A stretch of 64,000 nucleotides of DNA from Mobula hypostoma (taxonomy: Eukaryota). Under the pieces are notes generated by a model that saw only the letters and a program-made list of their open reading frames with translations, had not been told where the DNA came from and searched no databases. Of the stretch, positions 8,640 through 58,580 are shown in pieces; within the stretch, counting starts at the first letter, position 1, and each line of letters opens with the position of its first letter. The DNA lies in NCBI RefSeq assembly GCF_963921235.1, contig NC_086101.1, forward strand, positions 28,892,001-28,956,000, read 5' to 3'. The position numbers and the translations under genes are program-made.

Positions 8640-9300
8640 TGAGCAGCTTCCCACGGGCTATTGGGAGGTTCCTGAAATTTACACTCGCCGAATTTGATGC
8701 AACACGACTGGAAGTGGTTTGGCTCCGCTCCCTCCCGCGATCTGCTGACACTCCACTCCCCCCGCAGTCCATTTCTGTCGAAGGATTTTCAGTTACTGGC
8801 TGCACCTGCACCGACTGGCCGCGTCTGTGAATCTAACTCCACCCTCAGCACTTCACTGACTAACGATCAGGGTTCAGTCGATGCGAGGAGTTGTCGCAAT
8901 GGAGAGCTGGACCGGACCGGTATCGCTCCTTGTCACCGCGTTATCTCTCTGCTCTGTCGCGGGAGGCCAGGCAGGTGAGGCGAGGGTATGTGACGGCGAT
9001 GGTCGGGGTTTGTGTCGGGAAATTCACCTTTAAATCTTTTGGACTTTCTGGCTGTCGCTCCATTAGACGGGAAGACGACCTCACCGCACTCCTGTGTTCT
9101 CATTTCACTCCTGTGAAATTTCTGGAGTCGATAAACTCGGGGCAAAATGATACTTGAATAGGTTTCACAGGTGGATAGGAATTGTCGCCAATTCCCAGAG
9201 GAAAGTCCCACAATCTTAACAGAGGCATCACATTAAAGCAATTAATCTGAGTTTAACTATCCTGTAACTGCCACGTTACGTCAGTCTGTTTCACAATACC
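8640..9300 (+). promoter_or_regulatory. CpG island / putative promoter around exon 1, with a perfect NF-kB site (GGAAAGTCCC, 9200-9209) and a CRE-like TTACGTCA (9276-9283)
   Basis: About 30 or more CpGs in 8641-9140 by manual count, against CpG-depleted old repeats nearby. GGAAAGTCCC is the reverse complement of the canonical kB site GGGACTTTCC. ATTGG at 8660. Confidence 0.55.
8899..8974 (+). CDS. Exon 1, signal peptide (25 aa) of the MHC class I-like gene
   Basis: ATG at 8899, hydrophobic core [12 protein letters not shown], small residues before cleavage (GGQA), strong donor CAG|GTGAGG at 8975. The phase-1 G joins AC of exon 2 to give D-SHSL, the typical class I mature N-terminus. Lies in a CpG-rich non-repeat island. 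Confidence 0.78.
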
Positions 9301-12300
9301 AGAGAAATACTCCTGTTCTACCCATTCCTCTAGGGTCTGCACACACATAGCGGTCCGAGTGGCCTCTTTCTGTGCCTTATGTGTGAATGACTTCTCTGCT
9401 ACCAAAAACTAACTTGATTTCTCTCATTCCAAGTTCTGACTCAGGCTCCCGAATCTGAAACATTCATTCTTTGTCTCTCGGCAGATGCTACCCGAACTGT
9501 TCCAAGATTTCCATCTTGGTCATTAAACATTAGCCCTGTTTCTCTGTCCTTGCATGCTATCGGAACTTTCCGTCTTTAACTTGAGACATTAACAGTTCCT
9601 CTTTTCTCCAGATACTGCCTGGCCTGTTGACTATTGTCAGAACTTTTTCTTTCTATTTTCAAAGTGCATCAAGAGTTGGCTCTAAGTTTTGGTGATTAAT
9701 GTGGTAATAGACTGGCAGAACATTGATGCATGTTATGTACAAGGACTTCTGGGAGGTTTTGTAAAATCGCCAGGTTAACACCGCTCATGCCAAATGATGC
9801 AGCGGGAAGTGGAAGCAGTTGCCAGTGGACATGAGTGGCGAGTTCATCAAAGCTCTAGTGTTGGGGTGGTTGGTCAGTATGTTTACACATGGCAGACTAT
9901 GGAAGAGTCTGCACTGGCTGCTTACAGAAAATACAATGAAAAAGGAAGCAGAAGAAATAGAAGCAATAAATCACAAAGAGCAATATTGCTCAGTTTCAGT
10001 TAATTTTGGTAGCCGGGAATTTAGGACGCTCAGGGAGATTTTAGGTACGTTCAGTCCAATTCATCGTTACATGCATAAGAATGTTTTTTTTTCTCTCAGT
10101 GCGATACTCTGCCAGAGCCTCGGCGACCACTTTTTCAAGTGGTTGTCTTTGGAGGAAAGATTCTATGAGTGGTCCCCCAAGTCCTTCTCACAGCGCAGTG
10201 TTTTTTTACGAGGCCGAGTTGCGTACGCGACACTCAACCCGGCACGGATGGAAAGATCGAATGGCTCCGGAGTCCGGCGCCGATGTCACTGCGCCACCAG
10301 CCGGCCGATAAGAATGGTTAGATACAGATAAAATGAAAATCTCGCTTGCAGCAGCATTACAAGCAGGCATTTTCAGGGAACACACAGAATGACAGTTACG
10401 CAAAGCTTATGCAAGTCAATGAACAAAAACAGCGGCCGATTGAGACATCAGAGCTAAAAAAAAACACACAATCAGAGATGGCCGGCTGCAAAAGTACACG
10501 GGGAAGCAACAGCGGTTGTGCCTCTGGCACTGAGTCTGGCCCTGTGGCTCAGAAGGGTAGGCAACTTAAGAGGATGGCCCCAGTAATAGGAGATTCTGTA
10601 GGCAGGGGGACAGATGGGTGATTCTGTAGAAGCAGAAAGGAAACACACGTAGGGTTCTCAGCAATACTAGATGGACTATTAATTATTAATTGCTTATTAC
10701 CAAAATGGCTTCTCGTACTGTTAACTGCTGAGGCAGGGGTTCTCTGTAACCACATGTTTTGCTTAGTGAAAATGGAAATTGTATTCATTTGCTAGCCAAT
10801 GGAAGTCATGTTATGTTATTTTGTATGTGTGTGCTGAGTTGAGGAGCGCGGGCTTTTTCGGGAGGCGAGCAGAGAGGACGGACGTGCGGGGAACGGACAG
10901 CGGTTCCAGGGCAGCAGATACCGGACCTTGGGGGTTCGGATGGTGGCCGGAGTCTCGGAAGGAAGTTGTGGATGGAATCGGAGGCGTGAGCTCCAACGTA
11001 TTAAAATATGTGCACAAGACTGACGAGTTACTTATGTGGCGCCTTTTCTTTTAGTTGTTGCTACTAACCCACCACCAAAACTTGCTATAAAGTATAATTC
11101 GTTCCTCGCACTCGGTATATTGTTTGATATTTGTGTCGTGGCTGATCATTGGGTGCCTCACACCGCATCCGCACCAAAGCATTTGCACTGTTTGGCGGGG
11201 TCGACGCCTACTGACCCTAGGCGACGGGACTCAGTTGGGGCAAAGGCCGTTACATTGTGGGGGCTCGAGCCGCGGATTTCAATTCTGTCGGATACGGTGT
11301 AAATCGCCAGAGTTAAATAGAAGAGATGGATGCGTATAAGATTGAACCTTGGTGTGAGATCTTGGATGTCCCGGTTAATCATGCCTGGGTATTAAGTGGG
11401 GTGGATATACATTTCCCGGACGATGCGTTAATTCGATGTTTGAATACGGTCAGAGCTATCGGTAAGGTTGAGATTGTAAGCAGAAAGATTGGTAAAACGG
11501 GAGACTCCGCCTTTGTGCTGATACAGACTGGTGTTGACGTCAAGGAACTGGGACTGCCCCAGTCTATCGGTGAGGTGGGTGAGGCGGGACCGTGGGCGTG
11601 CACACTGTCACGGAGGAAGGGTTTGAAGAGACACCAGAGAAGTTGCCCGAGGCTACAGGCGGAGATTTTAGAGAGCGGGTCCATTCGTTTCTGAAGGATG
11701 AAGAAAGGGGGTGGTCGGATTTGGAGAATGTAATTAGTTCTCATCCCTCAGGGAAGGCGGAGGGCTCTGAGTTGGCCTCAGCCATTAACTCTTCGGTGAA
11801 CCGGGTGGTGGGTCCGCGACCGAAGTTAAGAATTTTCTCAGGGAAGACCCCCATCCCCGACGGGGAAGAGGATTATGAATCCTGGGTAGAACATACCTCT
11901 CAGCTGCTGGGTGAGTGGCAGTGTTCTGAGGAGGAGAAGCGACAAAGATTGGGGGACAGTTTGAGAGGGGCGGCAGCTGAGGTGGTAAAAGGGGTGAGAG
12001 TTAACCAGCCCCTGGCTTCTTGGAAAGAGTGTCCAGCCGCCCTAGAGGAGGCGTTTGGGCTGACGGGAAGCACGGTGGAGCTTTTCGGGGGGGGGGGCGG
12101 AATTCAGAATTTGCTTCAGGAGAAAGGGGAAAAGCTTTCTGAGCATCTTCTCCGACTAGAGCGTAGGCTAAATTGCTTGAGGCGCCGGGGGGTCATTTGG
12201 GGAATGAGGTGGATCGGATAAGTACCGATCAGGTAGCCAAAGGCGCGCAGAGATATGATGCGATGGCTACGAGTCTCCGGCAGTCCCGTAGAGCGCGTCC

Positions 12301-15300
12301 CCACCTCCCCACGCCCCCCGCCCCCCGCCCCCCGCCCCGCTTTGGTTCAGTTGCTCAGAGAGGTAAGGGAGGAGGAGGACGAATTGGAAGCGGAACTGGG
12401 ATCCGTTAACAAGGTACAAACCTCGGTAGCAGCTCCTTGTGGTGAAATGGCCGGGGCCAGCTCTACGCGGGAGATACAAAAGGGGGTGGCGGCAGGTGGG
12501 GTTCCTCCGCAGGAGGGGACTAGCGGAGAAGGCCCCTCCCTGAAGGGACGCACGGCGCTGAGGCCAGGCGAAGGCCGGGGTCCCGCGAGGCGAGGCGTGT
12601 GCTATAACTGCGCGGAAGAGGGGCACTTCAGGCGGGAATGTGAACGGCAGGGAGCCCCAAGGAAGGAGAGCCCCCGGGTGTCCTAGCAGGAAGAGGGGTC
12701 GGGAAACTTAGAAGAGACTCAGTGAGGGAACGGACTGGAGTCTCTGGAAAAATACGTTCCCAACAATGTGCAGCGGGACCATCGCAAGGAAAAGACCTTA
12801 TCCCATAGAACATAGAATAGTACAGCACAGTACAGGCCCTTCGGCCCACAATGTTGTGCCGACCCTCAAACCCTGCCTCCCATATAAGCCCCTATCTTCA
12901 ACTCCTCCATATACCTGTCTGGTAGTCTCTTAAACTTCACTAGTGTATCTGCCTCCACCACTGACTCAGGCAGTGCATTCCACGCACCAACCACTCTCTG
13001 AGTAAAAAACCTTCCTCTAATATCACCCTTGAACTTCCCACCCCTTACCTTAAAGCCATGTCCTCTTGTATTGAGCAGTGGTGCCCTAGGGAAGAGGCGC
13101 TGGCTATCCACTCTATCTATTCCTCTTATTATCTTGTACACCTCTATCATGTCTCCTCTCATCCTCCTTCTCTCCAAAGAGTAAAGCCCTAACTCCCTTA
13201 ATCTCTGATCATAATGCATACTCTCTAAACCAGGCAGCATCCTGGTAAATCTCTTCTGTACCATCTCCAATGCTCCCACATCCTTCCTATAGTGAGGCAA
13301 CCAGAACTGGACACAGTACTCCAAGTGTGGCCTAACTAGAGTTTTATAGAGCTGCATCATTACATTGCGACTCTTAAACTCTATCCCTCGACTTATGAAA
13401 GCTAACACCCCATAAGCTTTCTTAACTAACCTATCCACCTGTGAGGCAACTTTCAGGGATTAGTGAAACAATTAGTGAAATTTATGATGTTGTAGCAATT
13501 AGTGAAACTTGGCTACAGGAGGGGCAGGACTGGCAGCTTAATATTCCAGGGTTCCGATGTTTCAGATGTGATCGAGGCAGAGGAATGAAAGGTGGGGGAG
13601 TAGCATTGCTTGTTAGGGAAAATATTACAGCAGTGCTCAGGCAGGACAGATTAGAGGGCTTGTCTACTGATTCCTTATGGGTGGAGCTGAGAAACAGGAA
13701 AGGTACGGCCACATTAATGGGATTGTATTACAGACCACCCAATAGTCAATGAGACTTGGAAGAGCAAATCTGCAGAGAGATAGCAGGCAACTGCAGGAAA
13801 CATAAAGTTGTGGTGGTAGGAGATTTTAATTTTCCATACATTGATTGGGACTCCCATACTGTTAGGGGTCTAGATGGTTTAGAGTTTGTAAAATGTGTTC
13901 AGGAAAGTTTTCTATATAGAGGGACCAACTAGAGGGGATGCAATATTGGATCTCCTGTTAGGTAACGAATTAGGGCAAGTGACGGAAGTCTGGGTAGGGG
14001 AGCACTTTGGTTCCAGTGATCATAACACCACTAGTTTCAATTTGATCATGGACAAGGATAGATCTGGTCCTAGGGTTGAGGTTCTGAACTGGAAGAAGGC
14101 CAAATTTGAAGAAATGAGAAAGGATCTAAAAAGCGTGGATTGGGACAGGTTGTTCTCTGGCAAAGATGTGATTGGTAGGTGGGAAGCCTTCAAAGGGGAA
14201 AATTTGAGAGTGCAGAGTTTGTATGTTCCTGTCAGGATTAAAGGCAAATTGAATAGGAATAAGGAACCCTGGTTCTCAAGGGATATTGCAACTCTGATAA
14301 AGAAGAAGAGGGAGTTGTATGAAATGTATAGGAAACAGGGGGTAAATCAGGTGCTTGAGGAGTATAAGAAGTGCAAGAAAATACTTTAGAAAGAAATCAG
14401 GAGGGCTAAAAGAAGACATGAGGTTGCCTTGGCAGTCAAAGTGAAGGATAATCCAAAGAGCTTTTACAAGTATATTAAGAGCAAAAGGATTGTAAGGGAT
14501 AAAATTGGTCCTCTCGAAGATCAGAGTGGTCGGCTTTGTGCAGAACCAAAGGAAATGGGGGAGATCTTAAATAGGTTTTTGCATCTGTATTTACTAAGGA
14601 AGCCGGATTGAAATCTATGGAATTGAGGGAATCAAGTAGTGAGACCATGGAAAGTGTACAGATTAAAAAGGAGGAGGTGCTTGCTGTCTTGAGGAAAATT
14701 AAAGTGGATAAATCCCCAGCACCTGACAAAGTGTTCCCTCGGACCTTGAAGGAGACTAGTGTTGAAATTGCGGGGGCCCTGGCAGAAATATTTAAAATGT
14801 CGCTGTCTACGGGTGAAGTGCCGGAGGATTGGAGAGTGGCTCATGTTGTTCCGTTGTTTAAAAAAGGATCGAAAAGTAATCGGGGAAATTATAGGCCGGT
14901 GAGTTTAACGTCAGTAGTAGGTAAGTTATTGGAGGGAGTACTAAGAGACAGAATCTACAAGCATTTGGATAGACAGGGGCTTATTAGGGAGAGTCAACAT
15001 GGCTTTGTGCGTGGTAGGTCATGTTTGACCAATCTGTTGGAGTTTTTCGAGGAGGTTACCAGGAAAGTGGATGAAGGGAAGGCAGTGGATATTGTCTACG
15101 TGGATTTCAGTAAGGCCTTTGACAAGGTCCCACATGGGACGTTAGCTCAGAAAATTTAGTCGCTAGGTATACATGGAGAGGTGGTAAATTGGATTTGACA
15201 TTGGCTCAATGGAAGAAGCCAGAGAGTGGTGGTAGAGAACTGCTTCTCTGAGTGGAGGCCTGTGACTAGTGGTGTCACAGGGATCACAGGGATCAGTGCT

Positions 15301-18300
15301 GGGTCCATTGTTATTTGTCATCTATATCAATGATCTGGATGATAATGTGGTAAATTGGATCAGCAAGTTTGCTGATGATACAAAAATTGGAGGTGTAGTA
15401 GACAGTGAGGAAGGTTTTCAGAGCCTGCAGAGGGACTTGGACCAGTTGGAAAAATGGGCTGATAAATGGCAGATGGAGTTTAATACTGACAAGTGAGAGG
15501 TATTGCACGTTGGAAGGACAAACCAGCGTAGAACATATAGGGTTAATGGTAAGGCACTGAGGAGTGCAGTGGAACAGAGGGATCTGGGAATACAGATACA
15601 AAATTCCCTAAAAGTGTCATCACAGGTAGATAGGGTTGTAAAGAGAGCTTTTGGTACATTGGCCTTTATTAATCGAAGTATTGAGTATAAGAGCTGGAAT
15701 GTTATGATGAGTTTGTATAAGGCATTGGTGAGGCCGAATCTGGAGTATTGTGTTCAGTTTTGGTCACCAAATTACAGGAAGGATATAAATAAGGTTGAAA
15801 GAGTGCAGAGAAGGTTTACAAGGATGTTGCCGGGACTTGAGAAACTCAGTTACAGAGAAAGGTTGAATAGGTTAGGACTGTATTCCCTGGAGCATAGAAG
15901 AATGAGGGGAGATTTGATAGAGGTATATAAAATTATGATGGGTATAGATAGAGTGAATGCAAGCAGGCTTTTTCCACTGAGGCAAGGGGAGAAAAAAACC
16001 AGAGGACATGGGTTAAGGGTGAGGGGGGAAAAGTTTAAAGGGAACATTAGTGGGGGCTTCTTCACACAGAGAGTGGTGGGAGTATGGAATGAGCTGCCAG
16101 ACGAGGTGGTAAGTGCGGGTTCCTTTTTAACATTTAAGAATAAATTGGACAGATACATGGATGGGAGGTGTATGGAGGGATATGGTCCGTGTGCAGGTCA
16201 GTGGGACTAGGCAGAAAATGGATCGGCACAGCCAAGAAGGGCCAAAAGGCCTGTTTCTGTGCTGTAGTTTCTATGGTTTCTATGGATCTGTGTACATGTA
16301 CCCCCAGATCCCTCTGCTCCTCCATACTACCAAGTATCCTGCCATTTACTTTGTACTTTGCCTTGGAGTTTGTCCTCCTAAATTGTACCACCTTACACTT
16401 CTCTGGGTTGAACTCCATCAGCCACTTCTCAGCCCACTTCTGTATCCTATCAATGTCTCTCTGCAATCTTTGACAATCCTCTACACTATCTACAACACCA
16501 CCAACCTTAGTGTCATCTGCAAACTTGCCAACCCACCCTTCTACTTCCATATCCAGGTCGTTAATAAAAATCATGAAAAGTAGAGGCCCAGAACAGATCC
16601 TTGTGGGATACCACAAGTCACAATCCTCAAATCTGAATGTACTCCCTCCACCATGACCCTCTGCCTTCTGCAGGCAAGCCAATTCTGAATCCACCTGGCC
16701 AAACTTCCCTGGATCCCATGCCTTCTGACTTTCTGTATAAGCCTACCCTGTGGAACCTTGTCAAATGCCTTACAAAAATCGACATAGATCACATCCACTG
16801 CACTACCCTCACCTATATGCCTGGTCACCTCCTCAAAGAACTCTATCAGGCTTGTTAGACATGATCTACCCTTCACAAAGCCATGCTGACTGTCCCTGAT
16901 CAGACCATGATTCTCGAAATGCCCAGAGATCCTATCTCTAAGAATCTTTTCCAACAGCTTTCCTACCACAAACATAAGGCTCACTGGTCTATAATTACCC
17001 GGACTATCCCTACTACCTTTTCTGAACAAGGGGACAACATTCGCCTCCCTCCAATCCTCCGGTACCATTCCCGTGGACAATGAGAACATAAAAATCTTAG
17101 CCAGAGGCTCAGTGATCTATTCCCTCGCCTCCTGAAGCAGCCTGGGGAATATTCCGTCAGGCCCCGGGGACTTATCCGTCCTAATGTATTTTAACAACTC
17201 CAACACCTCCTCTCCCTTAATATCAACATGCTCCAGAACATCAACCCCACTCATATTGTCCTCACCATCAAGTTCCTTCTCATTGGTGAATACCGAAGAG
17301 AAGTATTCATTGAGGACCTCGCTCAGTTCCACAGCCTCCAGGCACATCTTCCCACCTTTATCTCTAATCAGTCCTACCTTCACTCCTGTCATCCTTTTTT
17401 TCTTCACATAATTGAAGAATGCCTTGGGGTCTTTCTTTACCCTACTTGCCAAGGCCTCCTCATGCCCCCTTCTTGCTCTTCTCAACCCCTTCTTAAGCTC
17501 CTTTCTTGCTTCCCGAGATTCCTCAATAGACCCATCTGATCCCTGCTTCCTAACCCTCATGTATGCTGCCTTCTTCCACCTGACTAGATTTTCCACCTCG
17601 CCTGACACCCATGGTTCCTTCACCCTACCATTCTTTATCTTCCTCACTGAGACAAATTTATCCCTAACATCCTGCAAGAGATCTCTAAACATCGACCACA
17701 TGTCCATAGTATATTTCCCTGCAAAAACATCATCCCAATTCACACCCGCAAGTTCTAGCCTTATAGCCTCATAATTTGCCCTTCCCCAATTGAAAATTTT
17801 CCTGTCCTCTCTGATTCTATCCTTTTCCATCATAATGCTAAAGGCCATGGAGTGGTGGTCACTGTCCCCCAGATGCTCACCCACTGAGAGATTTGTGAGC
17901 TGCCCCGTTTCATCACCTAGTACTAGATCTAGTGTGGCATTCCCCCTAGTCGGCTTGTCCACATACTGTGACAGGAATCTGTCCTGGACACTTTTGACAA
18001 TCACTGCCCCATCTAAACCCTTGGAACTAATCAAGTGTCAATCAATATTAGGGAAGTTAAAGTCACCCACGATAACAACCCTGTTATTTTTGCATCTTTC
18101 CAAAATCTTCCTCCCAATCTGCTCCTCTGTATCTCTGCTGCTACCAGGGGGCCTATAGAATACCCCCAATAGAGTAACTGCTCCCTTCCTGTTCCTGACT
18201 TCCACCCAAACTGACTCAAAAGAGGATCCTGCTACATTACCCACCCTTTCTGTAGCTGTAATAGTATCCCGGACCAGTAATGCCACCCCTCCTCCCCTTT

Positions 18301-48300: not shown

Positions 48301-51300
48301 ACTGATTTACTAGGTATTGAACTGCAAGTCGAATTCAGAATCTTGAAAAATTCTAATTCCACTGTTGATAGGTTTGTATATCTACAACTCTGGTTAACAT
48401 AGTGTCGTACTTGAAGGTACCTAAAAAAGTCGTTGTCTTCTAGGCCATGTTTGTCCTGCAGGATTTGGAAACTTTGTAATACTCTTTTATGTATAAATGA
48501 GAGGTAGGTTGTAAGACCTTCCTTTATCCATAGTTCAAATCTTTTATCTCCTCTGTTGGGAAGGAATTCGGTATCATATGCACACCATCTGAAAAGTTTT
48601 AACATGTTATTGATTCCACATGAATTAACCACCTTCTGCCATACGTTTACTGTAAGATTTATCCAACTGTTTTTAAACTTTTCCAATTGGGCCATCAATC
48701 CTTTGTCAGCTATTGAGGCCTGTAGAGGAAAACTGTCAACCAGTCCAAATTCTATTTCTTTCCATCTAGCCTTGTATTTCCCATTACACCAATGGAACAG
48801 AGGGGTTATCTGTGAGGCATAAAAATAATTTCTCAAGCAAGGAAGAACCATACCTCCTCCTTCCTTTCCTAACTGTAAGGTGTTATATCGAATTCTAGGT
48901 TTCTTTCCTTGCCAAATAAAGCAGGAAATCCATTTGTCCCATTCCCTAAATTGATTATCATCCACCTCCACAGGTAAAGGATGGAAAAGATACAGTAACC
49001 GACGGAGAATATTCATTTTTATAGTATTTATCCTTGAATTTAAACTTAAAAAGGGGATACGATTCCATCTATGCATATCTGCTATTATCTCTGAGATTAA
49101 TGGCCCATAATTTACCTGTGACAGCTTTGAAAGATCCTTCGGCAGGGTTATTCCTAAATATTTTAATGATTTGACTTCCCACTTAAGATCATATGTATCC
49201 TGCAATTTTTTGGATGGTGTATAATTTAGGGACATAACCTGCGTTTTCTTTACATTTATTTTATAACCTGATATTTTCCCAAAGTCATCCAACAGTGTAA
49301 ACAATCCTATAAATGATTTTTCTGGTTCACTCAGATAGACTAAAACATCATTTGCGAATAACGCCACTTTCTGTTCAATCCCTGCCACCTTGATACCTTT
49401 TACGATTTCGCTCTGTCTTATTAGTTGGGCAAGTGGTTCAATATACAGCACAAAAAGGAGAGGAGAAATTGGACATCCCTGTCTAGTGCTTCTCTCTAAA
49501 ATAAAGGAGTCAGAGAGGTCCCCATTTATCTTAATTCAAGCTGTAGGGCTGTCATATAGAGTCTGAATTACTTTAATAAACTTTTCTTGAAAGCCGAATC
49601 TTCCTAACACTCTGTATAGGAATGCCCAACTAACCGAATCAAAAGCTTTCTCAGCGTCTAGTCCTACTACCATTGTCTCTGTCTCGTTCTTATTAACTTG
49701 TTCTAATATGTGTAGAGTTCTCCTTACGTTGTCCTGTGTTTGTCTTTGTCGAATAAATCCAGTCTGGTCTAAATGGATTAGGCCAGGTAAAAGCTTTTCC
49801 AATCTGCGCGCTAATATAGATGTAAATAGTTTGTAATCTAAATTAAGAACACTAATTGGCCAATAATTGCCACATTCTAGTTTATCTTTACCCCCTTTAG
49901 GAATAACTGAAATAATTGCTTCTCTCCAGGAAGGTGGAGTTTCTCCTCTCTGCAAGATCCAATTAAAGGTGTTAAGTAGTAATGGGGCTAACTGTGACTT
50001 CAGCGATTTGTACCACTCTGAGGTAAACCCATCAGGACCTGGAGACTTTCCAGCCTTTAATCTAGAGATGGCCACATTCAGTTCTTTGGCAGTTACTGGT
50101 TCTAATAGGCTTTCATTTTGTAAATCTGTAAGTTTAGGTAGATCTAAAGAATTCAATACCCTGTCTATATAGGGCTCATTGGAGGCCCGGGTTTGGGAGT
50201 ACAGCTCTCGATAATATGTTTCAAAACTCTCTTGAATTTTCCCTATTGTATTCTCCACAAGCTTTGTCTTTGGATTCTTTATTTTATGAATTGTATTGTC
50301 TGCTTGTTGTTTTTGTAATTTATATGCTAATAATCTAGCTGATTTACCTCCTACTTCATAATTCTTTTGTCTCAGGTAAAGAAAATTTCTTTGAGTTTCC
50401 AATGTATAAATATCATCAATTTCACTTTGCAATTTTCTAATTTCCTGTTTTAAATTAGAATTACTTTTGTTGCTATCTACAACTTGAGTTGTTTTAGTTT
50501 TCCTTGAAGGTCTGCTACTTTTTGTGCATTGATTTTTTTCATGTGAGTGGTAATGGAAATAATTTTCCCTCTCAGTATAGCTTTCAGTGTATCCCATAAG
50601 ATCACTGGTGATGTTTCTCCCGTGTCATTAAGGTCTAGGTATTCTTTGATTTCTCCCATTAATCTCTCCATTACTTTCAGGTTATTGAGTATATGTGAAT
50701 TTAACCTCCACAGTGTTTTCCTCATTTTCCTTTCCAGGATTAGAGACATAGAGACTGGGCTATGATCCGACAGATCAATTGTTGCAATATTACAGTTTTT
50801 TATCCTGAGTCTATCTGTATTAAAGATAAAGAAATAGTCTGTCCTTGAATAGGCTGAATGAGGGAAAGAGTAATGTGTATAATCTTTACTAGTGGGGTGT
50901 AATTCCCTCCACACATCTATAATTCCCAACTCCTCCATCAATAAATTCATTTTCCGAGTCAGAGGTTTATTCTGAGTAACTATTCTTGAAGAATCTAATG
51001 CAGGATTTAACCTAATATTAAAGTCCCCTCCAGAGATTACTACCCCTTGATAACTGACCATTAGGTCAAAAATGTGTCTATAAAATGACCATTCACAACC
51101 TGGTGGAATATAAACATTCAGCACTGTTATTTCTGTACCTTCTATTCTTCCTGTAATTTTTACAAATCGTCCATCTTTGTCTTTAATCTCTGAAATATGT
51201 TCATAATTAAGAGTACTTGATACTAAAGTAGCTACCCCTCTTTTGTGGCTCAATTTATATGATGAATAAAATACATGCTTAAAGCCCATTCTTTTCAATT

Positions 51301-54300
51301 TTCCATGTTCGGATTGGCTCATATGTGTTTCCTGGAGTAAAGCTATTTGTGCCCTCTCTTTTTTCAATTTAGACATAATCTTATTTCTTTTAATTGGATT
51401 CAAAACCCCATTAACATTATAGGAAATTATTTTTACCAATTCAATTTGCATTTTTCTCTAGTAGAAAAAAAACACTCTCCTTTTCTAACGAAACAGTAAG
51501 CAATCCCTTCTCAACAGTAAACCAAAATATATAACCACACCCTAGACATTTTTGAATGTATAACATTTGAAAAATTTTCCCGACTTTGCACAGTGAGGCC
51601 TGAGCACCGACCCGCCTCAGTTCAGAGGGATAACCTCTATCTTCACCCTGTGTTAGAGGGCCCTCAGCAGTTTGAATAATCATAGAGAATTTTCTCCTAT
51701 TTATGTCTCGACCATATTGCTATCATTCAAGTTATTCCGTCTAGTTTATTTTCAGTTATCAGCTTTCATTTTACCTTTAAGTCTGATTTACTCTTTTCAG
51801 TCATTTCTCTTAATTAATCTGTATTCTCTGTACATTCGCGTCTGAATATTTGCAGCTTTTCCTTGTAGTTTGACACTCTGGTTCGTGTGGAGCATCCTCG
51901 CCACACTGGCTGCCTTGACTTCTGCGGAATCCCCTCCAGTAGCGACTCCGGTTGGGTGATAACTTTAATAGGTAGTCCCCAGTCCGCCAAGTCCAACATT
52001 GCCTCCTCCGCTGTAGCGTAAGTTTTTGTCCCTTCGTCGTAAAAGAGTCTCAGCCGAGCTGGATACAGGGTCTGAGATCTGATGTTGTTTTCCTTCAGGA
52101 CCCTCCGTGTTTCCGCATATTCTTTCCGTCTGGCAAGGATCCCCGGTGCGTAATCGTGGTCTAAACTGATTTTACAGTTGCTCCACATGAAACCTTTCTT
52201 TTGCCATGCACCTCTTCCTTCGTTCTGTAACTGAGAAATCTGACCAGAATCGATCTGGGCTGGGCGCCTGCTGGAGGCTGTGGTGCCAACGCACAGTGAG
52301 CCCTTTCTATCTGTAGGTCTTTTGTGTCCGGTATATCAAGGTTCTCTCTAAGCAGCTTCTCCACGAAGGGAATCATCAATCCGGGTTTACCTTCAGTTCC
52401 TTCGGGAACTCCGTAGATCCTCACATTTTCCCTTCTCGAGCGGCCTTCTTGGTCTCTTAGCTTCCACTGGAGCTGCTCTTGTAACTTTAGCATTTCTGCT
52501 ATCGCTTCCTCTGCGTTTCGTAGCTTCTCCTCAATTCCTACAATCCTCACTTCGGCTTCATCTATCCTCGAATTACTTTTTACTATTTCACCTTTAATAT
52601 CTTCCAGCTGTTTGTTGTTATCTTGTCGGAACTCGCGAATCTCTTCGAGAATCAAAGACAGATTCACCGATTCCTCCTCATTATCTCCATCCTGGCTAGC
52701 GGTGGGGGAACTAGGCCCGTCGCCTTGCTGCGTCTCTTTATATTTATCAGCCTTCGGAGCGGACTTTTTAATCTTGTTATTAGACATCATCCTTGCCCCT
52801 TTTATTAATATAGTTATACAATATTAAGAATTTGTCTAATTTCAATTTTGGGGCAGTTTACCCTCTTTTTTGTCGAGAGACCTTTTCCTTACGCCGCCAT
52901 TCCCTTGATGACCCCGCTACCATCCCTTTCAGTGTTATTTTAAATCAATTTTGGCCAGCTCCTCTCTCATGCCTCTGTAATTCTCTTTACTCCACTGTAA
53001 TCCTGATACATCTGACTTTAGCTCTCCTTCTCAAATTGCACGGTGAATTCTATTATATTATGATCACTTACCCCTAAGAGTACCTTTACCTTAAGCTCTC
53101 TAAACAATTCTGGTTCATTGCACAACACTCAATCCAGAATAGCTGATACCCCAGTGGACTCAACCATGAGCTGCTTTAAAAAGCCATCCGGCAAGCATTC
53201 TAGAAATTCCACTTCTTGGGATCCAGCACAAAACTGATTTTCCCAATCTACCTGCATATTGAAATTCCCCATGACTATTGTAACATTGCCCATTTGGCAT
53301 GCATTTTCTATCTCCCATTGTAATTTGTAGACCATATCCTTACTACAGTTTAGGGGTCTGTATATATCTCTCATCAGGGTCTTTTTACCCTTGAAGTTCC
53401 TTAGCTCTACCCACAATGATTCAATATCTTCTGACCCTACATCACCTTTCTAATGATTTGATTTTATTTTTTACCAACAGAGCAATGCCTCCACATCTGC
53501 CTACCCTTTTGATACAATGTGTATCCTTGAATGCTATTGCACACAAAATCATACATGCCAATCTGTAACTGTGCTACAAGTTCATCAACCTTATTCCAGA
53601 AGAGAACCCCTGCCCTCTCCACTAATTCCTTGGCCACACATACACCTGCCAAATCATACTATTCTTACCCTCACTGGCACGTGGCATGGGCAGAAATCCA
53701 GTGAGTACTACCCTGGAGGTCCTGTTTTACAGCTTTCTACACAGCTCCCTCAAATCTCTCTTCAGAACCTCCTCAACTTATCGACCCATGTCATTGGTGC
53801 CAAGATGCACCAAGATTTCTGGCTGCTCACCCTCCCTCCTGAAAATGCAATGGACCTGATCCGAGACATCCATGATCCAGGCAACTGGGAGGCAACATAC
53901 CACCTGGGTGTCACCATCGTGCCCACAGAATCTTGTCTCTGTTCTTCTGCCTGTGGAATTTCCCATCAACACTGCAGTCTTCTTCACCTCTCTGCTCTTC
54001 TGAGCCACAGCACCAGATTCAGTGCCAGAGAGGAGGTCACTATGGTTACACCCAGTAGGTTGTCCCCTTCAACAGTATCTAAAGTGGTACATTTATATTG
54101 AGGGGTATGACCACAGGTGTACTCTGCACTGGCTGAGCATTTCCCCTCCTTCTCCTGACAGTCACTTGTCTACCAATCTCCTACAACCAAGGGTGATTAC
54201 CTCCCTGTAGCTCCTATCTATCACTTCCTCTTTCTCCCATATGAAGCTAAGGTCAGTGAGCTGCAGCTCCAGTTCCTTAACACATTCTCCGAGGAGCCGC

Positions 54301-57300
54301 AGCTTGACGCACCTGGTGCAGATGTGTTTATCCGAGAGACTGGATGTCTCCCAGAATACTCACATCTCACACACAGTATGAGACACTGCCCCTGGAGTCA
54401 TTCTCACTACACTATGATGCCCTAACAGATAAGGAATGGACAATTAAGAACAAAAATACCCCTAATTGGATGTTTGATATCCTCTGTGTTGCTAGCTCAC
54501 TTTTTGCTGTTTGTGCAATCTGTTCTCTCTCTGCATGTTGGGTGTTTGATGTTTTCTTTGAACGGGTTCCTTGGTGCCTCTTTGTTCCTTTGCTGCATCA
54601 GAGGATAAACCTCAGAGTTGTATTCTGTATAAACACTTTGGTAATTAATCTACTTTGAATCTTTGAGTGAGGGCACTCCCAAAGGAGACATTGACTGATC
54701 TCCCGGTCTGGGGCAGTGAGGGACCTTCTGATCAATACTGCTGTGCTGAGGGCATTCTCCATCTTGCAGTTTGAGGATGATCTGAATTTGGGATATTGCA
54801 CGACAGCTGGACTGGGAACAGTGCCTGTGACCTTGATCTGGACCTATCCGATGAATGAACATAATCTCTGTCTGTAGTCTGCATGAGCTTGAGCTGGGGA
54901 GGCTGATTTCAGATTAGATGGTGAGTGTAATAGTGAGGCAGATCAGGTTCTGAGGCCGTGAAGGATGTGAGAGTAATCCCAACATTGAACACTGTAACTT
55001 CAGTCTGTAACGGTAAGGTAACATCAGCCTGTGTTGAGGTGGTGACATAATTTTTGATTCTTCCCCAGTTGCTCCAAAGACTCAGGTGTTGACAAGGAGG
55101 CCGACAGCTACTGAAGGCGAGAGTCTGTCGTGCATCATCACTCCCTTCTACCCCCGTGCTATCAATGCCACTTGGCTGAAGAATGGGCAGGTTGTCTCTG
55201 AGGGCTACAACGTGACTGTGCTACCAAACTACAATGATACATACTGGATGGAACTAGTCATTGAGCTGCAGGGCAACGACCCGAACATCTATACTTGTCA
55301 TGTCGTGCACAGCAGCCTGCCAAAGGCCCTGATGGTGAAGGGAGGTAGGTCATTGTATGGTACAGAATTTGCTTCATTCTGCCTGTGGTGGCTCATGGAC
55401 TCATGCAGCAGAGAAGGAGGCTCTTCAGCCTATCTGATTCATGCAAACCCGATTCATGCAAACCCTCTAGTTCTCAAAAACGCTTGGCCCGTCCCCTTCT
55501 TTAACTTGATGATTCAACTGCTCATCTAGATACGTCTTGAAAATTATGAAGGTCTCTGCCTCCACCATCTCCTCAGGCAGTCCATTCCCAAATCCAACAC
55601 CCCCTTGATGAAAGTATTCTTCTGTAAATTCCCTATAAACCTCTTAGTCATTATCTTAAACCTACCTCGAGTTATAGGCACCTTTACTACGGGGAAGGGT
55701 TTACTACTGTTCAAGTAAACACATGAAGTGGAAGCATAAACTGCAGCAAGTTAAACCTGTAGCATTCTTCAGAATCAGAATCAGGTTTATTGTTGCTGGC
55801 ATCTGTTGTGAAATTTGTTAACTTAGCAGCAGCAGAACAATGCAATGCATGATAATGTAGAAAAAATATAAAACAAGTAAATCAACTACAGTAATTATAT
55901 ATATGTATATTGAGCAGATCTTAAAATAGTGCAAAAACAGAAATAATATATATTTTAAAAAATTCTTCCAACATTTTCTATGTATTTCCTATCTACACCC
56001 CTAATAATTCTGTATAACTCCATCAAGTCCACCCTCAGTCTCCTCCCATCTAAGGAAAACAAAACCAGCATATCTATTCTCTCTTCCCATTCCATCTGAG
56101 CCACATTCCGGTGAATCTCCTCCGCACTCTGTCCAATGCAATCACATCTCTCCTCTGCTCTGGTGACCAGAACTGTAAACAATACTCAGAATGTAGCCTC
56201 ACCGGTGTTTTATAAAGCTGTACCATAATTCCCATGCCCTTGTATTCTATGCACTGATAACTGGTATCTCATACACTTCCTTCACCACCCTATTTACCTC
56301 TTTAAAAGACCTAATCAAGCATCTCCACCATAAAGCTGCACCATAAGTTCCCTTCTCTTGAATTCTATGCCCTGATCAGTGAAATCCAGCATCCTGTAGG
56401 CTATCTTCACAACCTTGTCCTCGACTTTGAACGACTTGCTCAAGTAGCCCCACTCCTTCTCTGAAAATTTCTTAATTCCAAGAACGTATCCCATTTCAAT
56501 TTTGGAAGTTATTATTTACTGTGCTCTTTTATCACTCAAATTAAATCTGTTCCTTCTGCTCACCAGATGTTACAGAAGCAGTTGAGCTGTTGGTCAAAGA
56601 AATATAATAAGAACTCAACAGAAATAACAACTAAGAAGCAATTGGGACTGTGGGCAGACCTGACTGTCAAGTCGTCACTGCCTGGCTGTTGGGTGTTTGA
56701 TTGTCATAGATTCATAGAATTCTGCAGCAGAGAAACAGACCCTTCAGTCCAACACGCCTTTGTCAATCAAGATTTCCATTCAAAGAAGTCCCATTTATCC
56801 TGGCCCATATCTCCCTAAACCCTTTAGATTCATGTACTGGTGGATGTATCTTGTAAAAGATGTTAACTTGTCTGCCTCAACCACTTCTTCTGGCACCCAT
56901 AAATTGACCATCATGTTGCCACTCAGGTTCCTGTTACATCTTTTCTCTCTTAACTTAAACCTATACCATCAGGAGCCCTGAAAAATTATTGTGCACTCTC
57001 TCTATGCCCCTCAAAATTTTATATACTTCTCTCTATAGCTCAGCCCCCTACACTCCAGGGAAAATAATCCCAGCCTATCTTGTCTCTCATTATTTCTCAA
57101 GCATTCCATTCCTGGCACCATCCTTGTGAATCTCCTCTGCATCCTTTCCATCCTAATGACATCCTTCCTTCCTCAAAGCACCTTCCATTCTCCTATCCTC
57201 CAATGTATAAGATACTACCCACCCAGGACTACCCTCCCCCACACACACCCCCGCCCCCGCTTCTCCCAGCTCCCATCAGGCACAGATACAAAAGCCTGAC

Positions 57301-57700
57301 AGAATGTACTACTATGATCAATGAACACTTCTGTCTTTCTCCTGTGAGAAAATTGAGTGGACCCAAACATAGTAAGATAGGCATCTGACCTCACAATCTA
57401 ACTTTTAATGGTCTTGCATCCTATTGCCAGCTAGCACCACATATCCTCTGTAAAAGTAATACATTACTCTGCATTCTGTTATTGTTTTCCCTTGTACAAC
57501 CTTAATATCCTGATGTAATGATCTGTATGGACAGAATGCAAACCATGTATTTCCACTGTACCTGGTAACTGGTGACAATAATAAAATAATTTATACATTT
57601 ACCGATCTTTACTTGGTGGACAGGAGTTGGTGAGCCCCATGCTGCAGGTCCTATGTTGGGGCTGATGACTGTGTTTGCGATCATCTTTGGAGTGATGTAG
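8899..57700 (+). CDS. Divergent non-classical MHC class I-like heavy chain, 5 coding exons: 8899-8974, 42863-43111, 45205-45465, 55069-55344, 57624-57700 (939 nt, 312 aa plus stop)
   Basis: Manual exon assembly. All four introns are phase 1 and the joined frame is open: leader [25 protein letters not shown] / alpha1 [23 protein letters not shown] / alpha2 [31 protein letters not shown] / alpha3 [29 protein letters not shown] / TM-like tail. The leader-to-alpha1 link across about 34 kb is the least certain junction. Confidence 0.88.
10648..11254 (+). repeat. 5' LTR of the Gypsy element
   Basis: Direct repeat of 23204-23613 plus 26352-26591. Termini cgtaggg...gttaca. Confidence 0.9.
11258..11267 (+). 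other. Primer binding site, tRNA-Pro type (TGGGGGCTCG)
   Basis: 3 nt after the 5' LTR. Identical to the first 10 nt of the MLV tRNA-Pro PBS TGGGGGCTCGTCCGGGAT. Confidence 0.8.
11326..12686 (+). pseudogene. Gypsy gag with PNMA-like N-terminal and capsid domains and a CCHC zinc knuckle, frameshifted
   Basis: [21 protein letters not shown]; [34 protein letters not shown]; [14 protein letters not shown]. Confidence 0.85.
12805..13440 (-). mobile_element. CR1 3' fragment nested in the Gypsy gag-pol junction
   Basis: (catagaa)n tail at 12804-12817; ORF 12866-13438 with [11 protein letters not shown]. Confidence 0.9.
13473..16284 (+). mobile_element. CR1 LINE (EN-RT-3' tail) nested inside a minus-strand CR1
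   Basis: ORFs 13441-13752, 13895-14389, 14608-15159, 15269-15496 and 15503-16210. Tail tttctatggtttctatgg at about 16268-16284. Confidence 0.9.
16285..18360 (-). mobile_element. CR1 LINE EN-RT portion
   Basis: ORFs 18038-18493, 17117-18034, 16571-17089 and 16134-16694. Confidence 0.9.
18361..22628 (+). pseudogene. Gypsy pol (protease, dUTPase-like insert, RT, RNase H, integrase), many frameshifts and stops
   Basis: AILDT(R)SQVTLLY at about 18420-18465; [24 protein letters not shown](T)[40 protein letters not shown]. Confidence 0.9.
19568..19996 (-). mobile_element. Short CR1 3' fragment inserted in the Gypsy RT
   Basis: (caataga)n tail. The Gypsy frame PDQYTV|PRAEDAL rejoins across it, with ggtc duplicated. 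Confidence 0.85.
23190..23203 (+). other. Polypurine tract
   Basis: ggtgggggggagaa immediately before the 3' LTR. Confidence 0.75.
23204..26591 (+). repeat. 3' LTR of the Gypsy element, split by a CR1 insertion (LTR parts about 23204-23613 and 26352-26591)
   Basis: Collinear with the 5' LTR on both sides of the CR1. Ends ggccgttata followed by the TSD CACA. Confidence 0.88.
23614..26345 (-). mobile_element. CR1 LINE (EN-RT-3' tail) inserted in the Gypsy 3' LTR
   Basis: 559-aa ORF 24644-26323, plus 24171-24719 and 23808-24164; (catagaa)n tail. Confidence 0.93.
26843..32126 (+). mobile_element. Full-length L1-clade LINE (ORF1 from 26997, ORF2 from 28387), degenerate; 16-bp TSD ggaatagaatgaggag
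   Basis: TSD at 26827-26842 and 32127-32142. Coiled-coil ORF1 with [15 protein letters not shown]; APE endonuclease ISFNVNG..LQE..SDH; RT; A-rich 3' end. Confidence 0.92.
30462..31171. mobile_element. Probable solo LTR (710 bp) inserted in the L1 RT
   Basis: Termini cgtaac...cttaca, flanked by catg/cgtg (consistent with a CpG-decayed cgcg TSD). L1 frame KLACY|ADDILIYL rejoins across it. Confidence 0.7.
32325..34288 (-). mobile_element. Rex1/Babar-type LINE, 5'-truncated
   Basis: ORFs 33704-34441 and 32453-33700: [50 protein letters not shown]. Confidence 0.88.
34560..34955 (-). mobile_element. Rex/Babar 3' fragment
   Basis: [31 protein letters not shown]; (caatt)n tail. Confidence 0.75.
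35960..39400 (-). mobile_element. CR1 LINE with ORF1 esterase, EN, RT and 3' tail; internal deletions
   Basis: ORFs 39071-39436 ([11 protein letters not shown]), 38521-38976, 38176-38442, 37715-38110, 36890-37693, 36401-36850 and 36039-36500. Confidence 0.9.
40780..41410 (+). mobile_element. Rex/Babar 3' fragment
   Basis: [26 protein letters not shown]; (aattc)n tail at about 41385-41410. Confidence 0.75.
41480..42110 (-). mobile_element. CR1 3' fragment
   Basis: (cataagac)n tail and homology to the other CR1 3' ends in the window. Confidence 0.7.
42863..43111 (+). CDS. Exon 2, MHC class I alpha1 domain (83 aa)
   Basis: Polypyrimidine acceptor ctctctctgtccttttactcag and donor A|GTGAGT. Translation [83 protein letters not shown] contains the class I SHSL-Y and G-x-x-DD-x-Q-x-x-Y-YDS motifs. 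Confidence 0.93.
45205..45465 (+). CDS. Exon 3, MHC class I alpha2 domain (87 aa)
   Basis: Not in the ORF track. Acceptor ttgataatttacag. Translation [87 protein letters not shown] has Q-x-x-x-GC and C-x-x-x-L-x-x-x-x-x-x-G-x-x-x-L-E-R, the canonical C101-C164 equivalents. Donor AAG|GCAAGT (GC-AG intron). Confidence 0.9.
45480..45790. repeat. Degenerate minisatellite with a period of about 25 bp (about 12 units, core GAGGGATCTCC)
   Basis: The core recurs at about 45490, 45640, 45689, 45714, 45740 and 45765, with more diverged units between. Confidence 0.6.
47108..52918 (-). mobile_element. Full-length L1-clade LINE, antisense in intron 3; 11-bp TSD accatcccttt
   Basis: TSD at 47097-47107 and 52919-52929. 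ORF1 52790-51814 (frameshift). ORF2 pieces 51451-50477 (EN), 50597-49536, 49451-48153 (FANDV at the YADD position) and 48156-47704. T-rich tail at 47108. Confidence 0.93.
52930..54400 (-). mobile_element. Decayed CR1 (ORF1 esterase and EN) that hosts the L1; continues at about 46775-47096
   Basis: [12 protein letters not shown] (53778-54008) and [14 protein letters not shown] (53129-53416). Confidence 0.75.
55069..55344 (+). CDS. Exon 4, alpha3 Ig C1-set domain (92 aa)
   Basis: Acceptor ttttgattcttccccag and donor GAG|GTAGGT. Translation [92 protein letters not shown] has C1-set motifs C..FYP..W..LPN..YTC-x-V-x-H-x-SL. Confidence 0.95.
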
Positions 57701-57736
57701 AGGTGCAGCAAGGAGAGAACCAAGACATCACTGGAG
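57624..57736 (+). CDS. Exon 5, connecting peptide plus hydrophobic segment, with in-frame TAG at 57698-57700
   Basis: Phase-1 frame reads [37 protein letters not shown]. An alternative in-frame acceptor lies at 57647. Donors GAG|GTGGGT (57737) or GTGG|GTAAAC (57741). Confidence 0.75.
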
Positions 57737-57826
57737 GTGGGTAAACGTACAGATGCCTTTGTTAAACCTGCTTGCTGTGACAGTATTAGACTGTACATTC
57801 AATCTCCTCTCTTTTCTGCTTTGCAG

Positions 57827-57925
57827 ATCAGCATTTGGCTCTAACTCAAGCACAGTTCTGAACACAGGGTGCAGCTTCAAACAGGTTTTTTTGATGAGTG
57901 ACCGCACACCTCAGCAAGCTTAGTC
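57827..57925 (+). other. Probable terminal exon (former cytoplasmic tail, now 3' UTR); 3' end undefined
   Basis: Strong acceptor tctcctctcttttctgctttgcag about 90 nt after the exon 5 donors. It is followed at about 57925 by the tail of an antisense Rex/Babar LINE. Confidence 0.5.
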
Positions 57926-58580
57926 AGAATAAGGATCAGATTTAATATCACTGGCATAGATCGTGAGATTTGTTAACTTTACGGCAGCAGTACAATGAAA
58001 TTGACAATAAATAAAAAACTGAGTTACACAAAGTATATATATGGCTGTTAAGTTAAAATAAGTAGTGCAAGATAACAGAAATAAAAAAAGTAGGAAGTAG
58101 TGTTCATGGGTTCAATGTCCATTGATAAATCGGCTGGCAGAGGGGAAGAAGCTGTGCCTTCAGGCTTCTGCGCCTCCTTCCTGATGGCTCCAGTGGGAAG
58201 AGGGCATGTCCTGGGTGGTGGTGGATGTAGCCTTCCTAAGGCATCGCTCCTTGAAGATATTTTGGATACTATGGAGGCTGGTACCCCGATAGATCTGACT
58301 AATTTTACAAGTTTCTGCAATTTATTTCAATCTTGTCTAGTTGTCCCTCATAACAGATGGTGATGCAGCGAGTCAGAATGCTCTCCATCGTATATTTGTA
58401 GAAGTTCTCGAGTGTTTTAGTTGACCTACAAAATCACCTCAACCTCCCAATGAAATACAGCTGCTGTCTTGGCTTCTTTATAACTGCATCCTCAGAGATG
58501 TTGACACCTAGGAACTTGAAATTGCTCATTCTCTCCACTTCTGATCCCTCTATGAAGATAGGTTTAGCGTTACAACCACT
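57925..58580 (-). mobile_element. Rex/Babar 3' fragment just downstream of the MHC-like gene
   Basis: MQKLVKLVRSI.GVPASIV.. (58048-58320); (cagaat)-type tail at about 57925. Confidence 0.65.

Follow-up and report, generated by a model that had tools for sequence, protein, structure and literature searches.

A RefSeq-annotated, intact non-classical MHC class I gene of the elasmobranch 8GM8 lineage in Mobula hypostoma

The window considered here, i.e. the whole stretch of 64,000 nucleotides that was analysed (Mobula hypostoma, the lesser or Atlantic devil ray; contig NC_086101.1, positions 28,892,001 to 28,956,000 of the forward strand; positions below count from its first letter), carries on its + strand a gene resembling class I of the major histocompatibility complex (MHC). 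With a probability of roughly 0.8, we read it as an intact non-classical MHC class I gene, already annotated in RefSeq, of the elasmobranch-specific lineage typified by the nurse-shark protein of PDB entry 8GM8, to which the names UFA/UGA are applied by inference. The spliced protein is identical at 312 of 312 residues to RefSeq XP_062903553.1 (P0065, 'isoform X1', Mobula hypostoma), its three ectodomain domains each find the 8GM8 chain as their best structural match, and it falls with that chain in a clade supported at 99/99. An earlier note, a tool-less reading of the raw sequence, had recovered this six-exon gene over 49 kb almost base-perfectly; its claim that the gene was hidden fails, the identical protein being in RefSeq, while its proposal of a complete class I-type gene from a cartilaginous fish, with one domain per exon, is borne out by the exon boundaries, the reading frame, the domain matches and the RNA joints.

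Gene structure and protein identity

All five exon starts proposed in that reading, and the first four exon ends, carry AG/GT (or ATG) boundaries. Exons 1-4, as proposed, measure 76, 249, 261 and 276 nt, all joints are in phase 1, and the sequence translates as an open frame of 312 codons, in keeping with the claim of an ectodomain free of stops and frameshifts. One domain per exon (leader, alpha1, alpha2, alpha3 and anchor), in phase 1 throughout, is the organization of a class I heavy-chain gene. Of the five exons originally delineated the first four were exact; the fifth, 57624-57925, turned out to be two exons split by a 90-nt intron, with the coding sequence ending at the TAG at 57698-57700. 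The gene thus has at least six exons, and 57701-57925 lies beyond the coding sequence. The alpha2 exon is indeed missing from the list of open reading frames (ORFs), and the exons are, as described, surrounded by transposon debris: the introns hold broken reverse-transcriptase and endonuclease ORFs of long interspersed nuclear elements (LINEs). The features are as follows:

8881..8974, + strand: exon 1, start codon and signal peptide, ending in phase 1 (sequence, GT donor; RNA loose end)
8975..42862, + strand: intron 1, 33.9 kb, with LINE fragments mostly antisense (ORF domain matches, locus comparison)
42863..43111, + strand: exon 2, alpha1 domain, 83 codons, phase 1 (Pfam MHC_I, E=0.002; 8gm8_A, E=5.3e-12; RNA joint)
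45205..45465, + strand: exon 3, alpha2 domain, 87 codons (8gm8_A, E=1.4e-8; alignment; RNA joint and loose end to alpha3)
45466..55068, + strand: intron 3, 9.6 kb, with a broken antisense LINE ORF2 at 48153-51451 (RVT_1 and Exo_endo_phos matches)
55069..55344, + strand: exon 4, alpha3, an immunoglobulin (Ig) C1-set domain, 92 codons, three N-X-S/T sequons (Pfam; 8gm8_A; RNA joint)
57624..57736, + strand: exon 5, connecting peptide, 16-residue hydrophobic C-terminus and 36 nt of 3' untranslated region (3'UTR) (translation; RNA joint; layout in seven other loci)
57698..57700, + strand: TAG stop, immediately following ...FAIIFGVM; the last exon junction lies 36 nt further on (no RNA variant; homologous TAG in other loci)
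57737..57826, + strand: intron 5, 90 nt, GT..AG, within the 3'UTR (RNA joint in four of four runs)
57827..58030, + strand: exon 6, 3'UTR, 3' end approximate (RNA contigs to 57997; AATAAA at 58006 and 58080)

The six extra N-terminal residues of P0065 come from the start chosen by RefSeq, an in-frame ATG at 8881 that lies 18 nt upstream of the ATG at 8899 proposed earlier; either start leaves a normal signal peptide. The gene of P0065 spans 49,524 nt on a 199-Mb chromosome, which fits the window, and this span together with the 312/312 protein match is the basis for taking the window as the XP_062903553.1 locus. Since a tblastn search of the whole window with each exon peptide found no second copy of any exon, the window holds neither an alternative leader nor a second gene; tRNA genes were likewise not found in it.

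Two further RefSeq isoforms of the same gene, P0064 (X2, 288 aa) and P0063 (X3, 282 aa), begin with 'MDSHSL' or with a methionine inside alpha1, and so are devoid of a signal peptide. Their probable source is a different first exon or transcription start within intron 1, rich in transposons, and they are unlikely to yield a surface protein. Several RefSeq isoforms of family members (P0001, P0054 and P0060, from Hemitrygon, Hypanus and Mobula hypostoma models) omit the alpha2 exon, so that alpha1 follows the leader and is joined directly to alpha3; they may be splice variants or annotation artefacts, and the frame can be kept since every exon is in phase 1.

Among the domains, alpha3 is recognized by Pfam as a C1-set Ig domain (E=2.7e-14 and 3.8e-13 in two scans), alpha1 gives the weak match to MHC_I listed above, and alpha2 has no Pfam match. 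The best match of alpha3, as of alpha1 and alpha2, is 8gm8_A ('MHC class I protein'; E=1.6e-24 for alpha3). Over its full length P0065 matches 8gm8_A at E=1.2e-59 (residues 33-291), followed at a distance by 9ch4_A (1e-26) and then by MR1, HLA and CD1c chains. The cysteines of the alpha2 motifs WGC and SNC align with the classical pair (C101-C164 equivalents), and the equivalents of C223/C278 in alpha3 are invariant. A second alpha2 pair (SCD...GKC) is specific to the family and common to all its members, including 8GM8.

Aligned with P0010, which served as the classical-type chondrichthyan reference, the protein keeps only Y7 and Y59 of the residues that anchor peptide termini (Y7, Y59, R/Y84, T143, K146, W147, Y159 and Y171), i.e. 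six of eight are lost: the equivalents of T143, K146, W147, Y159 and Y171 are all replaced, and the region of positions 84-86 falls in a 6-residue deletion that also removes the N86 glycosylation site. Because these anchors are lost, the position-84/N86 region is deleted and the MHC_I score lies below the Pfam gathering score, the protein is, as judged from its sequence, not a peptide presenter of the classical type. It further lacks the classical combination of a transmembrane helix and a cytoplasmic tail, the stop standing directly after the hydrophobic segment.

Placement in the lineage of nurse-shark 8GM8

An exhaustive HMMER search with alpha1 returned 35 matches, the best at 75% identity, and a profile search from the three best of these collected 30 proteins, all from sharks or rays, whose names, automatically assigned, include 'MHC class I-related gene protein-like', 'CD1d-like', 'HFE homolog' and 'zinc-alpha-2-glycoprotein-like'. 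The family has at least 28 annotated members in at least 14 shark and ray species. The window protein is 95% identical to one of them, P0040, in whose 90% cluster P0065 sits. The sequence in 8GM8 is that of the Ginglymostoma cirratum protein P0059 (UniRef A0ABF7PPZ1_GINCI).

In a maximum-likelihood tree of 25 family members and three outgroups, the family is monophyletic (99/99) and divides into a shark clade with one gene per species, which includes 8GM8, and a ray clade (100/99) with the skate in basal position, the shark and ray clades following the species tree. Within the ray clade one old paralogue pair is common to Mobula and Hemitrygon, and dasyatids, with six genes, and mobulids, with seven, each show an expansion of their own; P0040 is the sister of the window gene (100/100). 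Copy number thus ranges from one in sharks to five or more in Mobula and stingrays. The window protein also displays the signatures of the family: the GMLDDLQ motif, the extra alpha2 Cys pair, a short alpha1-alpha2 boundary and a tail-less hydrophobic C-terminus. On tree and signatures together, we place the window gene in the elasmobranch class Ib lineage of 8GM8, whereas the earlier note had left its lineage unplaced; the note's description of that lineage as poorly characterised holds. The Pristis protein P0062 represents another lineage, its best PDB match being 9ch4_A (4.6e-64), and the two sets of best matches indicate two structurally solved elasmobranch class Ib lineages, each present in sharks and rays.

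Membership in UEA, judged together with UDA from reviews and abstracts only, was rejected, as the family is present and expanded in rays; UEA has reportedly been found in sharks and not in rays.

As to the name, two reviews describe UFA/UGA, from unpublished data or personal communication, as MHC-linked, CD1-like lipid binders of sharks and rays with crystal structures under study (PMC10751288, PMC12562908), and the present lineage is probably one of these 'CD1-like' lineages. The linkage can be followed in the sawfish, where about 180 kb separate B2M from the family genes for P0046 and P0047 (chr34, 13.25-13.29 Mb). The supplement of Verissimo et al. 2023 gives the gene of P0046 (LOC127586135) the label 'MHC-Ib' and lists that of P0047, assigned to LOC127586042 by product name only, without a label between labelled genes.

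Anchor, selection and state of the window copy

The C-terminus is alike throughout the family: all 24 full-length members end in a hydrophobic stretch with zero cytoplasmic residues, the last 15 residues having a mean Kyte-Doolittle hydropathy of 1.9-2.8. Small-residue candidates for an omega site lie 22-27 residues from the end, as G-V-G/S in 20 of the 24 and as G-A-G, G-L-S or G-G-S in the other four; rays have G-V-G as the triplet, most sharks either G-V-S or G-V-G, and a polar spacer of about seven residues follows it. We applied the rule that a glycosylphosphatidylinositol (GPI) signal has a small omega/omega+2 pair, a polar spacer of 6-10 residues and a hydrophobic end of 12-20 residues with nothing after it. 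P0065 conforms to it, with G-V-G at 294-296, the spacer EPHAAGP and 15 hydrophobic residues before the stop. What the earlier note called the transmembrane exon, which encodes this tail-less end and has a further intron downstream of it, is thus more likely than not a GPI signal.

The competing possibility, that the segment is a tail-less transmembrane anchor of a type I membrane protein rather than a cleaved signal, we regard as unlikely. It can draw on the position of the exon, which is the usual place of the class I transmembrane exon, on an uncharged run of 16-21 residues that is borderline for spanning a membrane, and on the rule-based nature of the GPI assignment. However, not one member has a cytoplasmic or stop-transfer residue, the hydrophobic core measures only 13-16 residues, and the 7-residue polar spacer with the conserved G-V-G/S at omega distance recurs in sharks and rays. 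Under the GPI reading, the product would consist of a signal peptide, alpha1, alpha2, the C1-set alpha3, a short stalk and a hydrophobic end of 15-16 residues without cytoplasmic residues; this end would be exchanged for a lipid at the conserved G-V-G/S, some 24 residues before the terminus, tethering the mature protein to the cell surface. There it may pair with beta2-microglobulin and hold a hydrophobic, non-peptide ligand, and the tandem paralogues of rays may have diverged in the specificity for ligand or receptor.

Selection was estimated as Nei-Gojobori ratios of nonsynonymous to synonymous divergence (dN/dS) over the 15 pairs formed by the window copy and five sequenced Mobula loci; the pairs are non-independent, and the estimates include any gene conversion. 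In alpha3 the ratio is 0.23-0.52 in 14 of the 15 pairs, the window copy and L001 being without synonymous change there. In alpha1+alpha2 it ranges over 0.72-4.1 (dN 0.02-0.13; dS 0.02-0.085). Between the window copy and L004, nonsynonymous divergence reaches 0.100 vs 0.025 at synonymous sites and 0.043 in introns (Fisher p=0.008 and p=6e-6, respectively), an excess that is not significant in the remaining pairs. Consistent with these values, variable positions among seven mobulid proteins make up 73% of the alpha1-helix, 24% of alpha3 and 16% of the C-terminal signal. The family is clearly constrained in alpha3 and the anchor and diversifying in the ligand-binding domains; the alpha3 ratios and the conservation across sharks and rays thereby sustain the suggestion of selection that had been drawn from the open frame.

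Transcripts were assessed from RNA contigs of four runs of one organism that contain the alpha3 exon, aligned with 42300-46300 and 54700-58700. The joints 43111>45205, 55344>57624 and 57736>57827 are GT..AG and occur in each of the four runs; the loose end before 42863 matches the leader at 8942-8971 over 30 letters, with one mismatch that is the paralogue's allele, and the loose ends after 45465 and before 55069 match alpha3 and alpha2, respectively. One contig of 1135 nt extends from the leader over alpha1, alpha2, alpha3 and exon 5 as far as exon 6. Relative to the window, the contigs carry one difference in alpha1, about ten in alpha2, two to three each in alpha3 and exon 5, and three plus a 4-nt gap in exon 6. 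Of the 18 variant sites listed, 14 have the L001 allele in the RNA; among these are nine of nine in alpha2, 55119, 55306, 57682, 57692 and the leader, where Gly is replaced by Asp (GAC). L001, on an unplaced 516-kb scaffold of the same assembly, encodes P0040, and the match in alleles indicates that the dominant mRNA comes from this paralogue or from a very divergent haplotype. Thus the RNA check suggested earlier gives support for every splice junction, but mainly through another gene: the exon structure is confirmed through a sister gene 96-99.6% identical in sequence, and expression of the window copy itself is only hinted at, by a 61-nt contig over 57652-57712 with C at 57682, a base absent from the five other sequenced loci (about 18% of depth in runs X1 and X2), and by a 59-nt contig over 45209-45267 in run X3.

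In runs X1 and X2 at least three exon-5 haplotypes are seen over 57649-57722 within a single run, namely the window type, 57679A+57682A and 57682A+57692A, which indicates that one animal transcribes at least two loci of the cluster. In the same RNA, five short patches in introns and the 3' flank (44310-44577, 46186-46300, 55772-55905, 58050-58183 and 58452-58585) have word depths in the thousands in all four runs, 10-100x the depth of the exons, and many odd joints connect 55.8-55.9 kb with 58.1 kb; these patches seem to be copies of a short interspersed repeat with high expression and not parts of the gene.

The loci also differ in their introns. Five loci, L001 of M. hypostoma and four of M. 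birostris, are collinear with the window at 90-97% nucleotide identity, introns included. Intron 1 measures 33.9 kb here vs 7.1 kb in L001, which lacks about 26.8 kb of it. The insertions at 10648-39401 (intron 1) and 47073-52901 (intron 3) are common to L003 and L005 and absent from L001, L002 and L004, and the presence of long forms in M. birostris too implies that the long- and short-intron forms are older than the split of M. hypostoma and M. birostris. LINE ORFs with RVT_1 or endonuclease matches stand in intron 1 at 24644-26323, 32453-33700 and 36890-37693, and three adjacent ORFs with RVT_1 and Exo_endo_phos matches in intron 3. The ORF at 32453-33700 (- strand), a LINE reverse transcriptase of 415 aa, also matches ALKBH8_N (PF09004, E=7e-10), which is probably a LINE-derived motif captured in the Pfam model and not an AlkB-related domain.

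Several of these results, and a few others, weigh against an intact, expressed member of the UFA/UGA lineages with a GPI anchor. The RNA carries mostly L001 alleles, and the words of the variable part of the window alpha2 reach a share of at most 0.38 in every indexed RNA run. The 13 nonsynonymous and 2 synonymous changes between the window copy and L001 are indistinguishable from neutrality, and the freedom of the window copy from disabling change in 954 nt is, under neutrality, only mildly improbable and hence mild evidence of constraint. The Pfam MHC_I score of 20.5 bits lies under the gathering cutoff of 28.3 bits; an AlphaFold2 model on the 25-sequence family alignment has a mean predicted local distance difference test (pLDDT) score of 63, with alpha1 strands below 50, too poor for a reading of the groove; and GPI anchoring is judged by rule and conservation. 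Finally, because the literature search found neither a paper citing 8GM8 nor a primary description of the lineage, the UFA/UGA name is one that we infer.

The first of these points would be explained were the window copy an intact but silent or recently inactivated duplicate, the transcripts coming from the L001 (P0040) paralogue or haplotype and from other members of the cluster. We consider this improbable. The allele counts, the ceiling on window-type alpha2 words, the 13:2 ratio of changes and an intron 1 of 34 kb loaded with transposons, as against 7 kb in L001, all fit it. Against it stand the two contigs identical to the window, the tendency of Logan contigs to drop minor variants, and the intact long-intron copies that M. 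birostris also keeps (L003, L005). Moreover, the 954 nt show no stop, frameshift or splice defect, where neutrality predicts about two indel events relative to L001; the introns of this pair differ by 3.0% in substitutions and by 0.22% in indel events per site.

A more drastic version, that the gene is a pseudogene in which the TAG is a disabling nonsense mutation in a transmembrane exon, cutting off the cytoplasmic tail, is very improbable. The codons past the TAG do resemble a stop-transfer tail of basic character, and splicing still uses the old donor, but the stop is as old as the family. The TAG, with a basic tail-like stretch and a splice donor behind it, stands at the homologous place in eight loci (six of Mobula, one each of Pristis and Amblyraja), and all shark proteins end at the homologous residue; thus the stop predates the batoid radiation by the first observation and the shark-ray split by the second. 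Stops within about 50-55 nt of the last junction escape nonsense-mediated decay, and the TAG, only 36 nt before it, should not trigger decay; alpha3, in addition, is under purifying selection. The RNA contigs are free of variants at 57698-57700.

Behind the stop, 57701-57736 reads as a basic cytoplasmic tail, RCSKERTKTSLE, and each ray locus compared (the window and L001-L007) has an open basic tail-like stretch (RCSKERTK.., GSSKEGAK.., RRGAMRREAR..) up to the splice donor that is still used. The stretch may be a relic of the exon structure that once encoded a cytoplasmic tail, or else 3'UTR or splice-enhancer sequence under conservation. It lends no support to programmed readthrough into a tailed isoform, since 12-14 open codons are expected by chance.

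Significance and comparison with known systems

The gene itself is already known: its exact protein is in RefSeq, its lineage has a solved structure and that lineage is on a published MHC map. On these grounds the claim of novelty fails; the protein nests in a described lineage, which the earlier note had said would remove novelty while leaving the gene call unaffected. That it founds a new, unnamed class I lineage is scarcely credible: the sub-threshold MHC_I match and about 26% identity to classical-type sequences, which bear out its distance from classical class I, and the lack of a describing paper in the literature search are outweighed by the RefSeq-identical protein, the many annotated family members across sharks and rays, the deposited nurse-shark crystal structure, the sawfish genes shown as MHC-Ib in a 2023 paper, and the reviews that name UFA/UGA with such properties.

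The gene adds nothing to public annotation, and the interest lies at the level of the family, chiefly for comparative immunologists. The lineage ranks among the oldest in non-classical class I and has been reported as CD1-like, and for three of its features, i.e. the GPI-type C-terminus, the expansion in rays and the fast alpha1/alpha2 beside a conserved alpha3 and anchor, the literature search found no description. Tentatively, and at somewhat less than even odds, we propose that the 8GM8-type lineage may have been GPI-anchored since before the shark-ray split and underwent tandem expansion in myliobatiforms with alpha1/alpha2 under positive selection. If so, rays would possess a multigene, CD1-like system tethered to lipid rafts, with paralogue-specific ligands or receptors; the family features, if confirmed, bear on the early origin and diversification of non-peptide antigen presentation.

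Among known systems, nurse-shark 8GM8 is the closest, with about 39% identity, the GMLDDLQI motif, the extra alpha2 Cys pair, the shortened alpha1/alpha2 boundary and common alpha3 motifs; about 60% of residues differ, however, and the PDB construct is without the C-terminus, which makes a comparison of the anchor impossible. Like shark UEA and Xenopus XNC, the family comprises tandemly expanded non-classical genes, MHC-linked in the sawfish, with fast alpha1/alpha2 and a conserved alpha3, but unlike UEA it is single-copy in sharks and expanded in rays. The MR1 of the RefSeq product name reflects the class I fold, and MR1 chains are among the next PDB matches (7.5e-25), but the name was given automatically from the best hit: 8GM8 is much the closer relative of the family, which shows no similarity specific to MR1, and far higher scores against MR1 are reached by the other elasmobranch lineage (P0062/9CH4).

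Like CD1, the protein is a non-classical class I heavy chain in which the anchors for peptide termini are lost, and some family members are named 'CD1d-like' or 'CD1c-like' by NCBI. CD1 is, however, not its closest relative: CD1c is a distant PDB match (5e-23), behind MR1 and HLA, the Pfam domain MHC_I_3 (PF16497) is not matched by P0065 and is matched by only four of 25 family members, and the window protein, having no tail, lacks the cytoplasmic YXXphi motif for endosomal sorting. The combination of a tail-less protein and a hydrophobic end is itself known in GPI-linked class I-like proteins, e.g. mouse Qa-2 and human ULBP1-3, which similarly join a class I-type ectodomain to a short hydrophobic C-terminus with a stop inside the old transmembrane exon and no cytoplasmic domain. 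These proteins belong to unrelated lineages of independent origin; here, by contrast, the trait is fixed in a family that predates the shark-ray split, with GPI linkage as the predicted mode of attachment.

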